This document shows, in pieces, positions 6,069 to 57,678 of a DNA stretch of 64,000 nucleotides. The notes beneath the pieces are model-generated. The model ran no database searches. It saw only the letters and a program-made list of their open reading frames with translations, and was not told where the DNA came from. The number at the start of each line of letters is the position of its first letter. The first letter of the stretch is position 1. The translations under genes and the position numbers were made by a program. This DNA comes from Macrostomum lignano (Eukaryota): NCBI GenBank assembly GCA_002269645.1, contig NIVC01000249.1:346752-410751 (forward strand), read 5' to 3'.

Positions 6069-6795
6069 CAATCAAAATAGGTAAATTTATGCATTAAAAA
6101 GGAATATTTTGTATGATATTTCTGCAAAGTTCTCTTAATCCAAATTATTTAAAATATTTGATGGAATCAAGATAGTTTTGGATGTGATCTTGATCATGAA
6201 ATTTATTATTTAATAGCTAAATCAAAATTTTATGTTGAGATTTTGATGGACATTTTTTGGTAAAGAGAATATCTGCAGAATCTGCTATTAGATATTGCAT
6301 TCAATAATCATCTTCCTTCCCAGCACAGCAAAAGCAACTTTTATTTGGTTCAAATATTTAAAATGGTTAGGCCGAACCAGCCCATACCGAAAATCCAAGT
6401 TACTTGCGCTAAAAGAGAAAAGTGAAAACTTAATTTGTTTAAGTTTAATTTCAGTTTGATCTAGTGGAAAAAAGCTAGATTTTATCGCATTTTGTTGGAT
6501 TTATTTAGATGTTGTATACCGATCCGAATCCAATGCACTTTGATTTTCAACCGTTGCCCTAGCATTAATTTTTTTGCGTCTCAAACAGTTACCGACTCTA
6601 TGCGGAGTCTCAACGCAGAAAAACAACAATAACTTTTGTTGGATTTAGTTGGGTGTAGTTTAATTAAGTTGGATTTTAGTTGAATTTATTGATCGTAGGT
6701 AAAATACCTTTCAACTAAATTTCTAATTTTAGTTTTTGCTCCTCACGGCACCAGTAGTCCTTGACTTTCCTAAGGTAGACAATACATGACCTTCC

Positions 6796-33445
<26,650 letters not shown>

Positions 33446-33499: not shown

Positions 33500-33810
33500 C
33501 CAGAGTGTACATGCCTGATGGTTTGAGTCTGGGGCTGATGTACACCCTGTGTGAGCGTGTGTGAGTGCGTGCCCTTCGTACAGTTAGTTTGTTAGAGGCA
33601 GGGGGGTTGTGTGCATCCTGGCGCACTTCAAGCGACATTGTCACACAACCGGCGAGAGGCATTGCTGCCCACTTCGCCGACTCCCCTGAGCAGGCGCACA
33701 AGCGCGCGGATACGTACGCAGTCATACGCGCAGGCACACCCTCACACAGGAGTGTACAGCGGCCCTAACTTTATTTATCGTTAGGCATGTACACTTCACT
33801 GTGCCTTGGG
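33500..33810. mobile_element. Old, degenerate inverted-repeat (foldback/MITE-like) element
   Basis: AGTGTACATGCCT...TGTACACCCTGTGTGAG (~33504-33556) is an imperfect reverse complement of CTCACACAGGAGTGTACA...AGGCATGTACACT (~33741-33796). Confidence 0.5.
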
Positions 33811-34574
33811 GGTTGGCCCTCAAGCTGGGTGTTAACTGCAGAGCAGAGCCAAGCCGAGATTCCAATTCAGGCCCAGCTTTTCCCAAATTAAATGTGACTG
33901 CACTTGGAATCGAGCCTGGGCCGCTGGCACATCAAAGCTGCAATTATCATTGAAATCTTTTTTGCAAAGATGCTGAAATTCAAAGCGTCACAACATCATC
34001 TTACCACTATGAGTAGACGACACGAATGTTTATAATATTTTTATATCAGCTGACTTGAGTTAGTTCAGATAGGTTAAAAACCCGGGCTTGGCCTTCAATA
34101 TCCTAATTTAACTAATTAATTACTACTGTTAGTAATGAGATTGGATCTGAGATGCTTCTATCGGTGTGCTTCTATTCCTATTTCATTTTTAAGGATTTTT
34201 ATCTCAGCTTTTTTCAAGTTTTTATTCTCCGGATTGAGTTTGTGATTTTTATTAATATTATAATAATATTTTCTTATTCTATCTTGGCTACTACATGCAC
34301 CCATGACAGCTTTATCCTAAATGTTTCTTTTTATCAATTCCCAATATTATTTTACACTTATATGAAATGCATGGTCGCGTGTTGGCAACTTTTTTATTAT
34401 CATATCTGTGACAAGCAATATCCGTGAGTGCAAGAAATACATTGTGTGCACTATTTTTAGACGCTTAAGTCTCCTCGAAGTCTTATTTATTGATGTTTAA
34501 CTCTTAAAAATGATTCCATAGATTTCTGATAGCTTAATTTATTTAATAGTGGCTTGTGATGAGTCTTCACCACA

Positions 34575-36386: not shown

Positions 36387-43535
<7,149 letters not shown>

Positions 43536-43852
43536 ACAGAAGACAAGTTTAACAGCAGACAAATAATAAACAATTTTTTAGTATAAATGATTTTCAAAAA
43601 CTTTTGAATGAAAACGTGCAACAACGTAAATAAAAGTGTTGTTAATTTCTAGTTTTTTAATATTTAATCAACGCTATGCGCACGCCAATATGCTGCTGAT
43701 AATAACTTTATGATTTATTCAAAACATTTTCTGACATAAATTTACTTTTAATAAAAAAAGTAAAAATCGCTTACCAAGGAAAAGGAGTGGATGTAAACAA
43801 ATCTACTAATTCAACCAAAGGAGATCTACTTGCGTTTCTAGTGGCTGCTAGA

Positions 43853-46800
43853 TCACTTTTTATGACGATTATCTAGCTGCCCAGTCTGCGAGCAATACTG
43901 CCCCGCTGCTTCCAGCTCGCTGATGTCGGGGTCCTCCAGCGCCAGCTCCAGCGCCAGCTCCAGCGAGTTCTTCGCTAACTGCCCATGCAGCAGCTCAGCA
44001 CGGAGGCTCCACAGCAGGCAGCGGAAATTCAAGTACAGATGGTGCGGCCGCCCATCGCTGCTGAGTCTGACGGCGATGAGGTTCCGCGTGAACGGTGGGA
44101 GGAAGCTGAAGCAGAGCGACTGGAGACAGGGAAAGCAGAACCGCCAGGCGGAGGAGGGCAGGTCACAGAACCAGTCACAGGACTGGCCGATGTCTGTGGG
44201 AGACAAACCGGTGCGCACCCGGCGGTCGATTGTGGTCTTCAGCAGCTGCCTTGCCTTGGCCTCCTTGCCGAGCTTCAGCTGAATCAGGACCTGCGGGTTA
44301 GGGTTAGTTCAAGCAACGATGAACAAAGAAAGCGAGCTCTTGTGTTTCATGATGAGGCATCTGACCTTCAGGCAGATGACAACGCAGTCGCAGAAGTCGG
44401 GCAGGCAGCCCAGAATGAAGAGGCGATCTTTGAGAGTGGAAACATCATATTCTTTGGCCCCCAGCTCCAGCAGGCACTGGTGCACCAGGCAGTAGGCGCT
44501 CTGCATCAGGCAGCTCTCCTGGTACGCCAGCCACAGCCTGCGCACCTGCTGCTCCGTGAACGCGGAGTACAGCGGCAGCAGTGTGAACGGATGGAAGAAG
44601 AACTCATTGGATTCCAGCGGCTTCACTTGATTCCGCAAGTGGGCGGCGAGTGGTGACAAATCCTGACGCAACTGACCCAGTCGGCTGATAATCTGAAGTT
44701 TCATTTCAGCAGTCTCGGAGACCCCGGCATTCTTGAAGTACAGCGGAGCGTCAGGCATGAAGAAGTGCGGCATGCAAACGTCGGGCGACTTGCTTTCCTT
44801 CAGAAACTGCAGCATCAAATCGACTGCCTTCTTCAGCAGCTTGACGAGGTTGGCGGCCTCCCATTCACCTGGCTCTGTTGAGTGTATAGCCAGCATGTGG
44901 AACAGAAGACTCTTGGCGTGGTACGTCTTCAGGCCGTGACAACCGATCGATGGCAGCAACTTCTTGAATGCGCTCTTCAGCAGGACAAACAGCTGGCCCT
45001 GGACTGTGCTGAGCCGCCGCATGAGCTCCTTCTCCTGGAAGCTGAAGCTCACGCGGAGCTCGCTGTATCTGTTCGGTCTGGTCGCACGGACTAGATGGAC
45101 GGGACTGGACGCTGCCTGCTGGACATCGGGAAGCAGCAGCGCGATTCTCTCCTGTCTAAAGGAGCTGCAGCAGGGGAAGGCGTGGCAGGTGTCCTGGGCG
45201 GGCCGCACTCCGCAGGCTGCCGACCGCACAGCAGGCTGGCTGCCTGTAGTAGGAAAAAAGTCAGTTGAATATCTGTGCACAGACAAAGATAGGTAGACAA
45301 AGCGTAGCCTACAAATTAAGCATGCAATAAGCTGTACATGGCAAATATCGCAAGGCAGCTCAGCAATGCCTGACCAGATTATGTGAAGAGGGCACCAAAA
45401 GAGGACTTTTAACGCTAAAAAAATCAGGGCTCTCCACTTGGGATTTACTGCTGCCTCTCTGATTGTTCTTCGGTCACGAACAAGAATTAAGCAGTGCATT
45501 AAACAGTGGATTTTCGCTATCCTGGCTTGCTGGTGGTCACTCCTGACGATATCATTGCTGATCGAAAAATTCAAGCGCTGAGGATAGCACTCAGGCTCAC
45601 ACTGACGGCGTCAAAATCACGAAAGCCTTGTCCCGTCAATATCCTTGGGATTTCGCGCTTGGGCCAAGGGAAAATGATCCCACTGGCCTTGGCCATCCTG
45701 CAACCGCCTTCTGAGCCTCTTCATCGCGGAAAATGCTGAGATTGAACAGCGTGCGCTTGACCATACACCCGTGACGGTCTTTTGGGATCGGTTACACGCC
45801 AAGCTCCAAATAATGTGCGTATGCTACTGCTACAAGTACGCTTGCAGTTTTATATCTAATCTTCATATATAGAAAAAGGTGTGCAAAGCTACCTCTAGGA
45901 TACAAAAGGTAGCAAGAACACGCACCTGCACTCTCCTGCAGCAATGCGTGGCCCTCGAAAATTTTCAGCTTCCTGGAAGGCGGAACATTCGGACACTGGC
46001 AGCCGCCGTCAAGATGAAATTTCTCTCCGTCGACCAGAATTGTCCAGTCGATGTCGGAGTCGGCGTCAGTCCTGCCATTCAGCTGGACAAGGCTGTTGGC
46101 CCAGCCTTCAGCGTAGCTGCCAGTGAGGGTCCTGTCCTCGCTTGTGATCGAGCGCGCCGCCGATTCGAGCAAGTCGGCCATCTCCTGGAGGCATTGGGCC
46201 CTCTTAGCAGTGAATCCGGCCTCGCTGAGTCTTTGGTGCAGCTCCATGCTGAGCTCGACGTCATGTTCGGGCGTCCCTTCAGCTCTGAAAAATAATTGGT
46301 GAATAGCGTTTTCTAGCAGGACAGCCTATAGCCTATTCTGTTTGAGTTAGTAGCCAATAATGATGGCTCCAGTAACAAATCGCACAGGTCAAATCCAAAT
46401 GAATAAATAGTTCATTGACTCACGGAGTTACGAGTGACCACGGCTGTTCAGCGGCAGGAGCCTCAGCTGTTTCACGCTTCAGCTTGGCGCCATTGTCCCT
46501 CAGAATCCTTACAGTCTTTGTCTGGCCCAATCTTTGGGCCCTGACCAAGGCTGTGTGACCTTCATTGTCCACGAGCTCCTTGCTGGCTCCTCGGTCCAGG
46601 AGAGCCTCAATGAGCGATTCGTGGCCGCGCTCCGCAGCCAGCATCAGAGCCGTCAAGCCAGTTCCCTCCTTGCGATCAACGTCGGTCACCCGCTGCAACA
46701 GGTGAGCAGCAAGAGCGACGTGGCCAGCCGAGATGCACTTGAATAGCAGCTCGCTGACTGTGTCCTCCAACTGCACCTGTTCCAGTATCATCTCCACGAT

Positions 46801-48102
46801 GTCTTTCTTGTCAGCAACGGCACAGCTGGCCAGAAAGTTCAACAGCTTCTCCTCTTCCAGCAGCCACTTGGGCTGGAATGGAATCTGCAGCTTCTGCCAG
46901 AATTCTAGCTGCGAAACGGAGACTGTGTTGAACAGAATGTTCCTCAAGCACTTGTCTGTTTTGTTTCGATTAACTATTTTTGTCATGAGGTGATTCACTA
47001 GATCCACCTTGTCGGCCTGAGCTGCATACTGGGCTGCCTCACAGCAACAGTCGTCCCGTCTGAACTGTTCGACCTTGCTCAGCAGAGCATCAATTCGTTG
47101 AAGATCAACAGGATTTTGCTGCACTAAAGATTTCACGGCTTCGGTATAACACAGGACCCGTGACTTCTGCTCGGTAGGCAGCTCTGCGAACTTTCGCACA
47201 AGGTCCCAGTTACCAGCTGCAGCTTCGGCCTTCACCACTTCAATACAGCACTGAACTTTCAACCTTTCATGGTTTGCCGAGTGGGCAACGACGCTTTTTA
47301 CAAAGTCTATGAATTTGAGTTCAGCCGCCGTCTTGGTGGCCTCGACTAAGCAGAGTGACACGATTCTGCGGTCGGTGACATGCTCGAAAATGTAGGCGAG
47401 CAGCGATTCACTCTTCTTCAGAGCTGCAGACCTGGCAATCAGGAGGCAGCCGTTGCGGCGGGCCCAACCGCTCTGAGCTTGGCTCATGAGGCTGCTTACC
47501 AGTTCACCATAGCAGGCATCGGCCGCACACTCTATCGCAGCTAACAGGCATTGGTCTCTGACCTTTCCGTCAGCTAAAGTCTGCAAGAGGTCCTTGATGA
47601 AATCCAGATGACAGACTTCGGCCGCAGACTTGGCAGCCTCGGTGCAGCAGAAGCTCATGAAACTGCGGTGGACGGCGGCATCGAGTAGAGGAGCCATCTG
47701 CGCCACTGAGCCGTAGACTCCGCAACAACTGGCTGCTTTGCCGCACCAGTTGAGCCTTGCGCGCTCATCAGATATGCTTTTGGCTAAGGCAACAGCCGTT
47801 GCTGGCTGGCCTGCAAAAATAGCAACTCGAGACGCTTCCTCGCAGCACAAATTTCTTTGCTTCTCATCGGCGATGAGCGCCACGGCTTTAGACACGAATT
47901 CGCCACGGTCGCCGCGCTGAACCGCCTCCAAGACGGCTCCGATGCAGCAGCTGTCTCTGGCTCGCGGGTCATCGATAGTGTCAACGTGCTGACTGAATGC
48001 TTCGAATGTTCTGCAGTCGGGCCATTGCATGACTTGGCAGTAGCGCGGCGGCTGAAAAGCCAAGTTGGATTGCTTTGTGCCTGTCAAAATTGCATGTGAC
48101 AT
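43853..48102 (-). CDS. Helical-repeat/ankyrin protein fused to a Mab-21/cGAS-like nucleotidyltransferase (cGLR-type), ~1,117 aa, 4 exons
   Basis: Exons 48102-46424 (donor GTGAGT, phase 2), 46284-45926 (acceptor TTTTTCAG, donor GTGCGT, phase 1), 45243-44366 (acceptor TACTACAG, donor GTCAGA, phase 0) and 44290-43853 (acceptor CCCGCAG) total 3354 nt with no internal stop. Ankyrin: GLTALMLAAERGHESLIEALLDRGA, GHTALVRAQRLGQTKTVRILRDNGA. NTase: LTGSYAEGWAN...DADSDIDWTIL, AQDTCHAF, LRVSFSFQEKELMRRL, GLKTYHAKSLLF, MPHFFMPD. Confidence 0.85.
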
Positions 48103-48808
48103 TGCAGGAGTACCTGCGAGTACTACAGCACATGCTCAAGTGCCAGCTCATAGAAAGACCCGAAAATGGACTTAAAATATCGGCTCTGACTTATGAATCC
48201 GCAATTTTCAAATCAGTTTCGATGTAATTTAACAATAATCATAAAAATATGTCGAAAAATGGTTAACGAGCTACTCTTGAGCGTCACTGCGCTTTACAGG
48301 GATCCGAAGTTAATAAATATGCACTGTATTCAGTTAATTCACTTAGTACCTAGAAAATCGGATGAGGAACAATACATTGCATTACATTACTTTTCATTAA
48401 TTAGGTAGAAGAGAAGAGAGACAACATGTGAGGCGTGAGCCCTGAATGAAAACAAGTATGTGCTTTCACAATTGTGATTTTTACATTAAACCGACGTTCA
48501 GCCGACCTTTAATTGATTAAATTATTTTTGTTGGTTTCGTCAGCAACGGTAGGTCGGCAACGTCGGTCAATGTTAGACATTTTACATTTAGAAATTAGAT
48601 AAAAATTATGGTATATTGAGACAAACACGACTACATTTTACGAGCGCACGCTATACACTATCGTAAACAGAGGCAGCTCAGAACAAAAGATGTCGAAGTA
48701 AGCTAAGACATTTTCAAATCAAAAGATTTATCACGTCATATAATATTTAAAAGTACATGCTCGCTGAAGCACAGGTTCTGACATGCAGAATCAAATACAT
48801 CATATTCG

Positions 48809-50553
48809 TCAAGAAATCCCGCAAAGGCAAGCCGAACTAGCCGAACTACGAGTAGAGGGCTTTTTTTCGGGTGAATTCCACTGCGTGTTGTTGAGGATGT
48901 CCAGGACGGTCCAGGACGTCAGGTGGCCTAGCAGCGGCATTTCTGGGTGGCGCAGTTGCAGCCTCTCTGGCGGAATACCCTCCATTGCCGCGATTGACGC
49001 ATTTAGTTGACTGACAGTTGTGAACTCTGTTCCTGTCAGTGTGACAGTTCTGCCCTGCTGTGACTCAAAGCAGAGCTGCACTCGGCCCCGCATGCTGAAC
49101 CTGAGCTGCAGAACATCTCCGTGCTTGACTCCGCAGTCTGTCAGAGTCCTGCCGATCTGCAGCGGGACACTGGCTCTGCACAGAGAAAAGCTGTCAGAGA
49201 CGCTCGGCAAAGCCATTGGGACAATTTGCTCCAGTTTTGAGACCACTGTATCAGAGGAACCCGCTTCTGTGTAAAGAGCGACTGTGCCAGTCCTGGGATA
49301 ACCGGATTTCCAAGGAGTTTTGACAAAGAAATCAATCAACAGTTTCAGCCTAATGGCTGGCTGGCGGTTGAGAATCCACGAATAGTCTGTCTCCATTCTC
49401 TGTTGTTCCGCACCTTCTTTCGGTTTTTTGTTCAAATGTCGAAAACAGTGACTTTGTCGCTTATCTCACTGTCACCGATTGCAATAATCGGTCTGCCAGA
49501 TGGAATGAACGCTTCAGGGTTTTTCTCTCGGAGTGTTTCCTTCATCAATTTTACTGTGTCTGATAGATTTACCTGCAGTGAAATTTCCTTGCGATTCCAT
49601 GTGTGAACAACGACTTGTCGCTGAATCTTCAATTTTAGAGACACAAAGTCACCGATTGCGTAGCTGGCTAAAGAGTGACTGTCTTCGAGCTGCTTCTCTC
49701 CGAAAGTCAGAACTTGGTTTTCTGCTTGGATGCCAAGTCTTTCGTGGATGTATTCTTTGACTTTGCCGATTGGCACACTGATTGGCACAGACTGATTGGC
49801 ACACTGATTGGCACACTGGAAGATGGTCTCGAGATGGTCTGACAAGATGGTCTCGTCAATCAGTGTCTGTACGAAGATCTGCGTACGATTAGGCAGACGA
49901 TGCAACAGGTGGAGGGTCGATTCCTTCCGGATGTCGTAGTTCGACAGGGTACGACGGTTGTCCAGCTGCTTACCGTCAAAGACCAGACGCTGCTGGTCCG
50001 GAGGGATACCCTCCTTGTCCTGGATCTTGGCCTTCACATTTTCGATGGTGTCCCATTTCTTACATGGCAGGGTGATGGTCTTGCCGGTCAGTGTCTTGAC
50101 AAAGATCTGCCAGTCACTGCAGTCAGTGGCTCCACCACGCAGACGCGGTATAATAAAGAGGATCGATTCCTTCTGGATGTTGTAGTCCGACAGGGTGCGA
50201 CCGTCCTCCAGCTGCTTGCCGTCGAAGATCAGACGCCGCTCTACGGTATCAGGGATACCGTCCTTTTCCTGGATCTTGGCCTTCACATTTTCGATGGTGT
50301 TATATGGCTCAAATTGCAGGTCGAAGGTCTTGCCGGTCAGCGTTTTAATGTAGATAATTTTTTCGGGCTTGTAGATTGAAAATGCAAGGGCGAGTTTGTT
50401 CTGATTTTTCTCCGGACATTTTTCCTCGTCAAAGCAAAACACAAAATCGCATGCTTCGCATTCGAGTATCAAGCTGTTCAAACTGTACACACAGTCCGGG
50501 CACACAGGCCACCGAGGCCAGCATGCATTGTCAGTGGGCAAGCGCCTTGCCAT
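48809..50553 (-). CDS. Tandem ubiquitin-like domain protein (~6 UBLs, Cys-rich N-terminus), split by a one-base frameshift at ~49434
   Basis: UBL1 ([13 protein letters not shown]...[31 protein letters not shown]) and UBL2 ([14 protein letters not shown]...[35 protein letters not shown]) are close to ubiquitin. Four more divergent UBL-like repeats follow. ORFs 49432-50553 and 48809-49435 join if GAC ATT TGA AC is read GAC ATT TTG AAC (one extra T). Confidence 0.8.
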
Positions 50554-53899: not shown

Positions 53900-54772
53900 T
53901 CAGGCCGAGCGCAAGAACGAGCGAATGAACTCGTTGTAGTCAACGGAGCCGCTCCGCTCGGGGTCGTAGGCGCCGGTCAGCTGGTAGAACTCGTCGTCGC
54001 TCAACGTCAGGCCGAACCGGCGAAGCACTCTACGAAATACGGACGGAGATGCACGGCCGCGACCATCGGGATCCTTTGGTGGGGGAGAGATTATTGTTGA
54101 TAGCAATAAATAAGGACCCTAGCAACCCATGTAGTCTCCCCTAGCAACCCATGTAGTCTCGCCTAGCAACCCATGTAGTCTCCCCTGGCAACCCATGTAG
54201 TCTCGCCTAGCAACCCATGTAGTCTCCCCTGGCAACCCATGTAACCTCCCCTAGCAACCCATTAGGTCTCCCCTAGCAACCCATGTAGTATCCCCTAGCA
54301 ACACATGTAGTCTCCCCTAGCAACCCATGTAGTCTGCCCTGCTCACCTGCTCGCGAAACACGCGTCGCATCTCTTTCCAATCCTCGAGCACCCTTCGCCG
54401 CAGCCGCATCGCCAGGGTCAGCATCCCCCCATCGCCGCCGCCGCCGCCGCCGCTCCGCACAGTCGCTGGTGGCTCCGCCGCCGCAGGCGCCGCTGAGACA
54501 GCTGTCGGCGCCACAAAACTGATTCTGGCGCGCTCCATCTTTCGTCGAACGATTTGCGCCGTCTCCGGCCCGCCTCTGGCGCTCGCCCTGGCGCCGCCGA
54601 TGCCGACGGTGCTGGCGCCGTCGCCGGACACGAAGGCGCGCACGCAGTCCTGGTACCGGAAGTAGCCGTCGCCCCGTAGTCCGAATCGGCGCAGAATTGG
54701 CGCCACCTGAGACGGCGCCAGGTGGACGGCGCCGGACGAACGAAGCACCGCGCAGAATTCGTCGACGTGAAT
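53900..54772 (-). CDS. EFCAB6: Second EFCAB6-like copy, last two exons (54772-54347, 54073-53900); upstream exons not in the window
   Basis: IHVDEFCAVLRSSGAVHLAPSQVAPILRRFGLRGDGYFRYQDCVRAF...WKEMRRVFREQ | DPDGRGRASPSVFRRVLRRFGLTLSDDEFYQLTGAYDPERSGSVDYNEFIRSFLRSA*. Frames and splice sites are intact. Confidence 0.8.
54115..54340. repeat. Intronic ~22-bp minisatellite (CTAGCAACCCATGTAGTCTCCC)
   Basis: Homologous to 36608-37050. Confidence 0.9.

Positions 54773-54894: not shown

Positions 54895-57678
<2,784 letters not shown>

Follow-up and report, generated by a model that had tools for sequence, protein, structure and literature searches.

Two probable neighbouring genes, a polyubiquitin-derived gene and an ankyrin cGAS-like receptor gene, in the flatworm Macrostomum lignano

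The minus strand of a 64,000-nucleotide (nt) window of the Macrostomum lignano genome (assembly GCA_002269645.1, contig NIVC01000249.1, positions 346,752 to 410,751; all coordinates below are those of the window) carries a series of long open reading frames (ORFs) between 50553 and 43853. They belong to a gene encoding multiple ubiquitin-like (UBL) domains (48809..50553) and to a gene that combines ankyrin (ANK) repeats with the nucleotidyltransferase (NTase) core of a cGAS-like receptor (cGLR; 48113-43853). The first is a single exon, made up of two ORFs split by a frameshift and closed by its own stop codon (48811-48809), while the second has four exons and encodes 1,117 amino acids (aa) counted from an ATG at 48102, 706 nt beyond the UBL stop at 48809. 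An earlier note on this DNA had read the AT-rich gap of 736 nt (48114..48849, 37% GC), which starts with GTAGTT and finishes with CTCGCAG, as an intron joining both parts into a single protein of ~1,690 aa, a cyclase gated by ubiquitin-like units. Our analysis indicates that the locus probably consists of two separate, co-oriented genes and not of one fusion. The same note had kept such a gene pair as its fallback, a reading that our analysis supports.

The upstream ORF of the UBL gene (373 aa, 50553-49432) matches PF00240 at 1.5e-57 and the downstream one, in another frame (208 aa, 49435-48809), at 2.1e-8. The protein opens with 65 aa (50359..50553) in which a zinc-ribbon-like motif, W-x2-C-x2-C-x10-C-x2-C, can be read (in its fuller form W-x2-C-x2-C-x4-N-x5-C-x2-C). 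Pfam returned only sub-threshold zinc-ribbon matches for this part (E 0.018 and 0.063); the cysteine spacing is reminiscent of ubiquitin-binding zinc fingers of the RanBP2/NZF type. Two near-canonical units follow. UBL1 (50131..50358) is 72% identical to ubiquitin and ends in RLRGG (LRGG at 50142-50131), and UBL2 (49885..50112) is 78% identical and has the tail LHRLPNR, with no di-Gly; a small ubiquitin/NEDD8 profile detects them with i-Evalues of 1e-33 and 4e-36, respectively. With the same profile, the remaining units gave partial or degenerate matches, from 3.7e-9 to 6e-3. These are UBL3 and UBL4 (49435..49881), the former interrupted by 4.1 copies of a 12-nt unit, repeated in tandem and in frame (49768-49818), and UBL5 and UBL6 (48878..49342). 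The array of six units that had been proposed is thus present, with six matches, but only the first two are strong. Di-Gly occurs only after UBL1, UBL2 to UBL6 being devoid of GG, and since this di-Gly is internal, its exposure for conjugation would need proteolytic processing.

The two UBL ORFs are separated by a frame-2 stop at 49468 and a frame-1 stop at 49434, so that one extra base is needed within 49465-49435 of the minus strand. The frameshift that had been placed at 49434 therefore stands as a disruption, but its position is refined to a gain of 1 nt anywhere in that interval, where short T runs are possible indel sites. A run of six A was rejected as the site because it is situated past the frame-1 stop. 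As many as 72 GT..AG pairs would restore the frame as a short intron; however, the one with the best donor (GTGAGA, 49469) would remove a conserved segment of UBL4 that aligns with ubiquitin, and this solution was also rejected. A one-base indel is our main reading of the disruption, due either to an error in the assembly or to a recent mutation that inactivated the gene.

The latter possibility is linked to the question of whether the UBL gene is still functional. Between UBL1 and UBL2, which share 75% DNA identity, the ratio of nonsynonymous to synonymous divergence (dN/dS) is ~1.1 at a dS of 0.28. A search with the divergent part of the protein (N-terminus plus UBL3 to UBL6) found no homologue in M. 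lignano; the sole match, P0037, a multi-UBL protein on an unrelated European Nucleotide Archive (ENA) metagenome contig, has no cGLR nearby and was discarded. These results, together with the frameshift, the incomplete UBL6 and the in-frame tandem repeats in UBL3 and in the tail of the gene (9 nt x 2.1, directly past the proposed splice donor), would fit a dying or dead duplicate derived from polyubiquitin and without current function. Such a decay, which is compatible with the existence of two genes, strikes us as possible but doubtful. Apart from the single shift, 581 codons are open, and a one-base indel near short T runs is a typical error of long-read assemblies. Moreover, the chance of finding no stop in the divergent UBL3-4 and UBL5-6 stretches is 2e-4 and 1e-4, respectively, with 1/20000 and 0/20000 shuffles free of stops. 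That these stretches are open beyond chance indicates that the gene was coding through most of its divergence. We conclude that the UBL gene is clearly coding, at least until recently, and that, as far as can be read from its sequence, it is a lineage-specific, fast-evolving and frameshifted derivative of polyubiquitin.

The end of the UBL protein deserves separate consideration. UBL6 has no recognisable last strand, and the single-sequence AlphaFold model of the protein, with a mean predicted local distance difference test score (pLDDT) of 33, is uninformative for UBL3 to UBL6. The ORF ends in ...CLCGIS* (48826-48809, minus strand), where the asterisk stands for the stop codon and C-G-I-S resembles a CaaX box. 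Prenylated ubiquitin-fold proteins of the MUB/UBL3 family provide a precedent for such a tail. If it is functional, the annotated stop of the UBL gene would be the true C-terminus.

The four exons of the ANK-cGLR gene, here called B to E, form an uninterrupted frame of 3,354 nt from ATG 48102. Exon B (46424..48113) encodes about 11 Cys-rich ankyrin-like helical repeats followed by three canonical ANK repeats (~46746-46474); it overlaps a 560-aa ORF (48102-46420) with ankyrin repeats at its end, which has an Ank_2 match at 9e-16. Exon C (45926..46284) corresponds to the N-lobe of the NTase and contains LTGSYAEGW (46127-46101) and DSDIDW (46061-46044). Exon D (44366..45243) encodes RPAQDTCHA (45205-45179), which holds the third acidic residue, as well as the Mab-21_C helical lobe. 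Exon E (43853..44290) encodes a family-specific C-terminal extension (AWRFCF...LYLNFRCL) and ends on the stop at 43853, followed by an AATAAA at 43719. The junctions use canonical sites, namely the donor GTGAGT (46423) and the acceptor TTTTTCAG (46285) between B and C, in frame; the donor GTGCGT (45925) and the acceptor CTACTACAG (45244) between C and D; and the donor GTCAGA (44365) and the acceptor ACCCGCAG (44291) between D and E. In tblastn, M. lignano proteins supported each of the four exons, the direct passage from C to D and the frame in which exon E is read. A hidden exon between C and D, with DFDAV as the source of the third catalytic Asp, was considered and rejected, the direct C-D junction being in frame and matching P0001 and P0038 residue for residue. 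We regard this predicted gene model as convincing, with clean exons and intact catalytic motifs.

The Pfam family Mab-21_C recognised the product at 25.4 bits, against a cut-off of 24.1. A phmmer search of the cGLR domain against PDB gave no match and a family profile was required, with which the cGLR1 structure 8gjy was found at 3e-5 and cGAS at ~5e-4, many cGAS structures being among the matches. The AlphaFold model, built from an input of 18 sequences, has a pLDDT of 86.2 and a predicted template modelling score of 0.89, and its top Foldseek match was human cGAS (1.5e-7; template modelling score 0.58, normalised to the target). Further matches included MAB21L1, MB21D2, MiD51, the Tribolium cGLR and bacterial CD-NTases. 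On these grounds, the downstream gene is modelled as a protein with the bilobed NTase fold of cGAS and Mab21. Catalysis by cGLRs is marked by the motif h[QT]GS-x(8-20)-[DE]h[DE]h, with a third acidic residue lying another 50-90 residues along the chain. In the 1,117-aa model we found L-T-G-S and, after 20 residues, D-I-D-W (residues 613-640), while D697, in RPAQDTCHA, corresponds to the Asp of RPAxDxVxA, the consensus of the family. The catalytic signature of the predicted protein is thus intact. The identity that had been assigned to each domain, that is, the UBL array, the helical repeats, the ankyrin repeats and the cGAS-like NTase, is borne out.

The isoelectric point of the cGLR core is near neutral (6.7-7.0), and a tendency to be basic has been reported for cGLRs that sense nucleic acids (Li et al. 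2023, bioRxiv 10.1101/2023.02.22.529553). Taken together, these two facts argue against a direct sensing of nucleic acids and suggest the ankyrin solenoid, instead of a basic surface, as the sensing element. In the mechanism that we propose, the ankyrin-like solenoid would recognise a ligand or a partner protein, which would in turn free or activate the NTase core and lead to the production of a nucleotide second messenger. No STING gene was found in the window.

Relatives of the gene were sought with its 557-aa cGLR region in a profile-free scan of 1.84 billion representative sequences, which returned 147 representative matches, 60 of them below 1e-30. All the 18 matches sampled down to E ~2e-8 are from Macrostomum lignano, and two sampled weak matches are from ENA assemblies. 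The closest relative, PAA62074.1 / A0A267EM79 (P0038), has 1,217 aa and is 52% identical in the cGLR region. Nothing more than 52% identical to the predicted ANK-cGLR turned up in the databases searched; it is a new paralogue in a family that, judging by these matches, is greatly expanded in Macrostomum. ANK repeats and an NTase core in one polypeptide were found in 41/46 relatives, and ANK-fused cGLRs are a domain class already described by Li et al. (2023, bioRxiv 10.1101/2023.02.22.529553), who report most platyhelminths to be devoid of immune cGLRs. The word 'ubiquitin' is absent from the text of that study.

PAA62074.1 and the gene described here both have ANK-type repeats at the N-terminus and, after them, an NTase of the Mab21/cGAS fold that contains GS...DxD...D; they also have an equivalent exon structure and the same family-specific C-terminal extension. 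Unlike PAA62074.1, our gene has fewer and more degenerate Cys-rich repeats and an extra intron of 75 nt, between exons D and E. A tandem paralogue of PAA62074.1 starts 9 kb downstream of it (locus L001, 10001-21065 and 30026-31065), with 67-71% identity in the first exon and a nearly identical region upstream of the ATG; no consistent acceptor pattern was seen upstream of the ATG in the M. lignano paralogues. Some Macrostomum relatives are fused to a caspase domain (Peptidase_C14), and a RING or a WSC domain occurs in single members; the M. lignano relatives concerned are P0043, P0185 and P0046 (locus L008, 10001-18307). A cGLR-caspase fusion would represent an unusual arrangement of sensor and effector.

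The sequence features on which the proposed fusion was built are all present, including the UBL ORFs, the RLRGG after UBL1, the GT at 48849, the AG at 48114 and their match in phase. The splice sites ACTC/GTAGTT (exon end 48850) and CTCGCAG/ (exon start 48113) are compatible, and the exons sum to 1704+1690+359+878+438 = 5069 nt, which the correction of the frameshift by one base turns into the 5,070 nt originally given. A single cis-spliced product of ~1,689 aa (six UBLs, repeats, ANK and cGLR) would follow from the removal of the 736-nt intron 48849-48114 and would depend additionally on that putative correction. Besides the compatible phase, a fusion is favoured by the presence of a 682-nt intron in the ANK-cGLR gene itself and by the composition of the gap, whose 37% GC equals that of the likewise AT-rich B-C intron. 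Nevertheless, the candidate donor CTC/GTAGTT failed as a credible donor. It has C at -1, G at +4 and T at +5, and thus lacks the G at -1, the A at +4 and the G at +5. A G at +5 was found in all nine reference donors, four of them in the window (GTGAGT, GTGCGT, GTCAGA and GTGAGG) and the other five in M. lignano paralogues, where they could be reconstructed exactly (GTGAGT three times, GTAAGT and GTACGT). The candidate also departs from GT[G/A]AG, the top enriched motif at M. lignano cis-donors, present in 122,399/187,627 regions around cis-splice sites (PMC8629364).

Nor does the agreement in phase favour a fusion as much as it may seem. Of the eight GTs within the final 190 nt of the UBL ORF, four are in phase 1, and the same phase is needed by all three AGs in exon B's open leader of 36 nt. 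With four such GTs and three such AGs there are 12 compatible pairs, and a match between donor and acceptor is no better than expected by chance. The downstream exon, in addition, has a start of its own. Its frame is closed by a TGA at 48138, and the first ATG (48102) lies 11 nt past the acceptor and 36 nt past this stop. PAA62074.1 likewise begins with its own Met ~30 residues before the first repeat.

The relatives give no indication of a UBL part either. None of the 147 representative relatives matches ubiquitin or the UBL ORFs of the window (phmmer, E<=10), and among the top 46, Pfam found ANK in 41, Mab-21_C in 37, caspase in two, RING and WSC in one each, and ubiquitin in none. The earlier note had itself proposed to look for linked UBL genes at paralogous loci, and had counted a lack of such linkage against its idea; at eight M. 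lignano ANK-cGLR loci, with flanks up to 10 kb and 204 kb in total, none was detected (tblastn, E<=1). Taken as a whole, the evidence makes a gated-cGLR fusion unlikely, and we consider a single cis-spliced protein to be very improbable.

If the two genes are separate, the 736-nt gap is more likely intergenic, or an outron, than an intron. The AG at 48114 would then accept a spliced leader or a non-coding 5' exon and not the UBL exon. In M. lignano, 30% of the genes are trans-spliced to a spliced leader and 15% are in operons, defined by same-strand gaps of <1 kb (PMC8629364). Downstream of the cGLR lies a third co-oriented gene, which encodes an EF-hand protein (40351..43624, minus strand) and would complete an operon-like cluster; from the cGLR stop at 43853 to its ORF at 43624 the spacing is ~230 nt. 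Both same-strand gaps, of 706 and ~230 nt, are below 1 kb, and an AG acceptor lies a few bases before the start codon of the ANK-cGLR gene, as in the operons described for this species (PMC8629364). It is therefore possible that the three minus-strand genes form a spliced-leader operon, in which UBL, ANK-cGLR and EF-hand would be co-transcribed and thus co-expressed without being fused. The first ORF of the EF-hand gene has no ATG and opens directly after an AG. In flatworms the spliced leader has ATG as its last bases, and it may be this leader that supplies the start codon. This gene also has a 66-nt intron, GTGAGG...TTTTTCAG, near 42411-42346, and the best matches of its product are a mollusc protein (42% identity) and a Joint Genome Institute (JGI) protein, with no Macrostomum match. 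No spliced-leader RNA sequence was found in the window, nor did Rfam find anything.

Some of our results weigh against the separation of the two genes. The UBL frame requires a phase that the acceptor at 48113 provides, and the canonical AATAAA is absent from the 736-nt gap, where there is only the variant ATTAAA at 48513, a point that also counts for a fusion. The missing last strand of UBL6 makes the C-terminus of the UBL gene look unfinished. The acceptor TCGCAG only approximates, and does not exactly match, the reported trans-splice motif [T/C]TNCAG (PMC8629364). Finally, the M. lignano comparators are paralogues of at most 52% identity and not an orthologous locus, so that a new, lineage-specific fusion would go unseen. 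Still, with a poor donor, an ATG after an in-frame stop and relatives devoid of UBL, two separate genes remain the reading that we favour.

Separate proteins might nonetheless work together. The UBL and ANK-cGLR genes could be co-transcribed from a spliced-leader operon. The UBL protein, possibly cut at RLRGG beforehand, would modify the ANK-cGLR, scaffold it or serve as a protease tripwire for it, in analogy with ISG15, OASL or the Cap2/Cap3 regulation of the cyclic-oligonucleotide-based antiphage signalling system (CBASS). We consider such a module unlikely, although the shared strand and the 706-nt gap, short enough for an operon, are consistent with it. UBL1 keeps the full RLRGG tail, which is needed for recognition by deubiquitinases, and the dN/dS of ~1.1 is compatible with a gene engaged in an arms race. 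The same ratio and the frameshift, however, fit relaxed constraint equally well. The linkage is not conserved at 8/8 M. lignano ANK-cGLR loci, and the divergent UBL part has no homologue found in this species. Furthermore, the third gene of the cluster encodes an ordinary EF-hand protein, and operon neighbours in organisms with spliced leaders are often functionally unrelated. No E1, E2 or JAB-like partner was seen among the ORFs in a non-exhaustive scan.

An even bolder version would have the six-UBL array captured, in this flatworm lineage, ahead of the ANK-cGLR, through splicing from the weak donor or within one operon, with cleavage at RLRGG by a deubiquitinase of host or pathogen switching the cyclase. 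If true, the captured array would be an independently evolved animal analogue of OASL/ISG15 and of ubiquitin-like control in CBASS. We regard this scenario as highly improbable. The ubiquitin-gated coupling advanced in the earlier note could not be upheld, the adjacency of the two genes being all that speaks for it.

Vertebrate OASL is an innate-immune protein with an OAS-fold NTase and two C-terminal UBLs in the same polypeptide, and in humans it is inactive. The resemblance consists in the association of an NTase-fold innate-immune protein with tandem ubiquitin-like domains. Here, in contrast, the UBLs lie upstream and apparently in a separate gene, and the NTase is of the Mab21/cGAS type with a predicted intact catalytic motif. 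With ISG15 and polyubiquitin, the UBL gene shares the head-to-tail arrangement of ubiquitin-fold units and the RLRGG kept by UBL1. It differs from them by having six units of steeply falling similarity, a single di-Gly that is internal and not C-terminal, a zinc-ribbon-like N-terminus and a frameshift, with no concerted evolution. The likeness to CBASS is conceptual, that is, the link of ubiquitin-type chemistry with a cyclase of the cGAS family; our Foldseek search recovered CD-NTases, among them CdnG and DncV, as distant fold relatives. In the Cap2/Cap3 systems it is the cyclase that is conjugated as the 'ubiquitin-like' moiety, with E1/E2 and JAB enzymes encoded alongside. Such enzymes were not seen at the present locus in our non-exhaustive ORF scan, and no beta-grasp protein is known to be involved in CBASS.

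Other features of the window lie outside the cluster. At 6786-8426 and 24081-31258 of the plus strand there are ordinary animal genes, with one ORF for a doublecortin domain and a row of ORFs for PLAT/LH2 domains. The window also has a satellite-like array (29649-30133), ~73% identical to a tandem array in locus L002. Interspersed repeats at 1071-1395, 10288-10417 and 33588-33941 have copies with 80-90% identity in several M. lignano contigs (L005, L009) and are probably fragments of transposable elements. Upstream of the UBL gene, a 22-nt x 10 tandem repeat (54117-54340) adjoins a long (ACAG)n microsatellite of ~696 copies with 90% matches (54895-57677), which accounts for the extreme AT skew of that region.

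If the fusion were true, ubiquitin-like domains would for the first time be seen to gate a cGLR physically, in convergence with OASL and CBASS. What our data leave in its place are two things, namely the predicted gene model of an ANK-cGLR and a fast-evolving, ubiquitin-derived neighbour that possibly shares an operon with it. Rather than a new kind of system, the locus represents a reasonable candidate for studies of innate immunity in flatworms.

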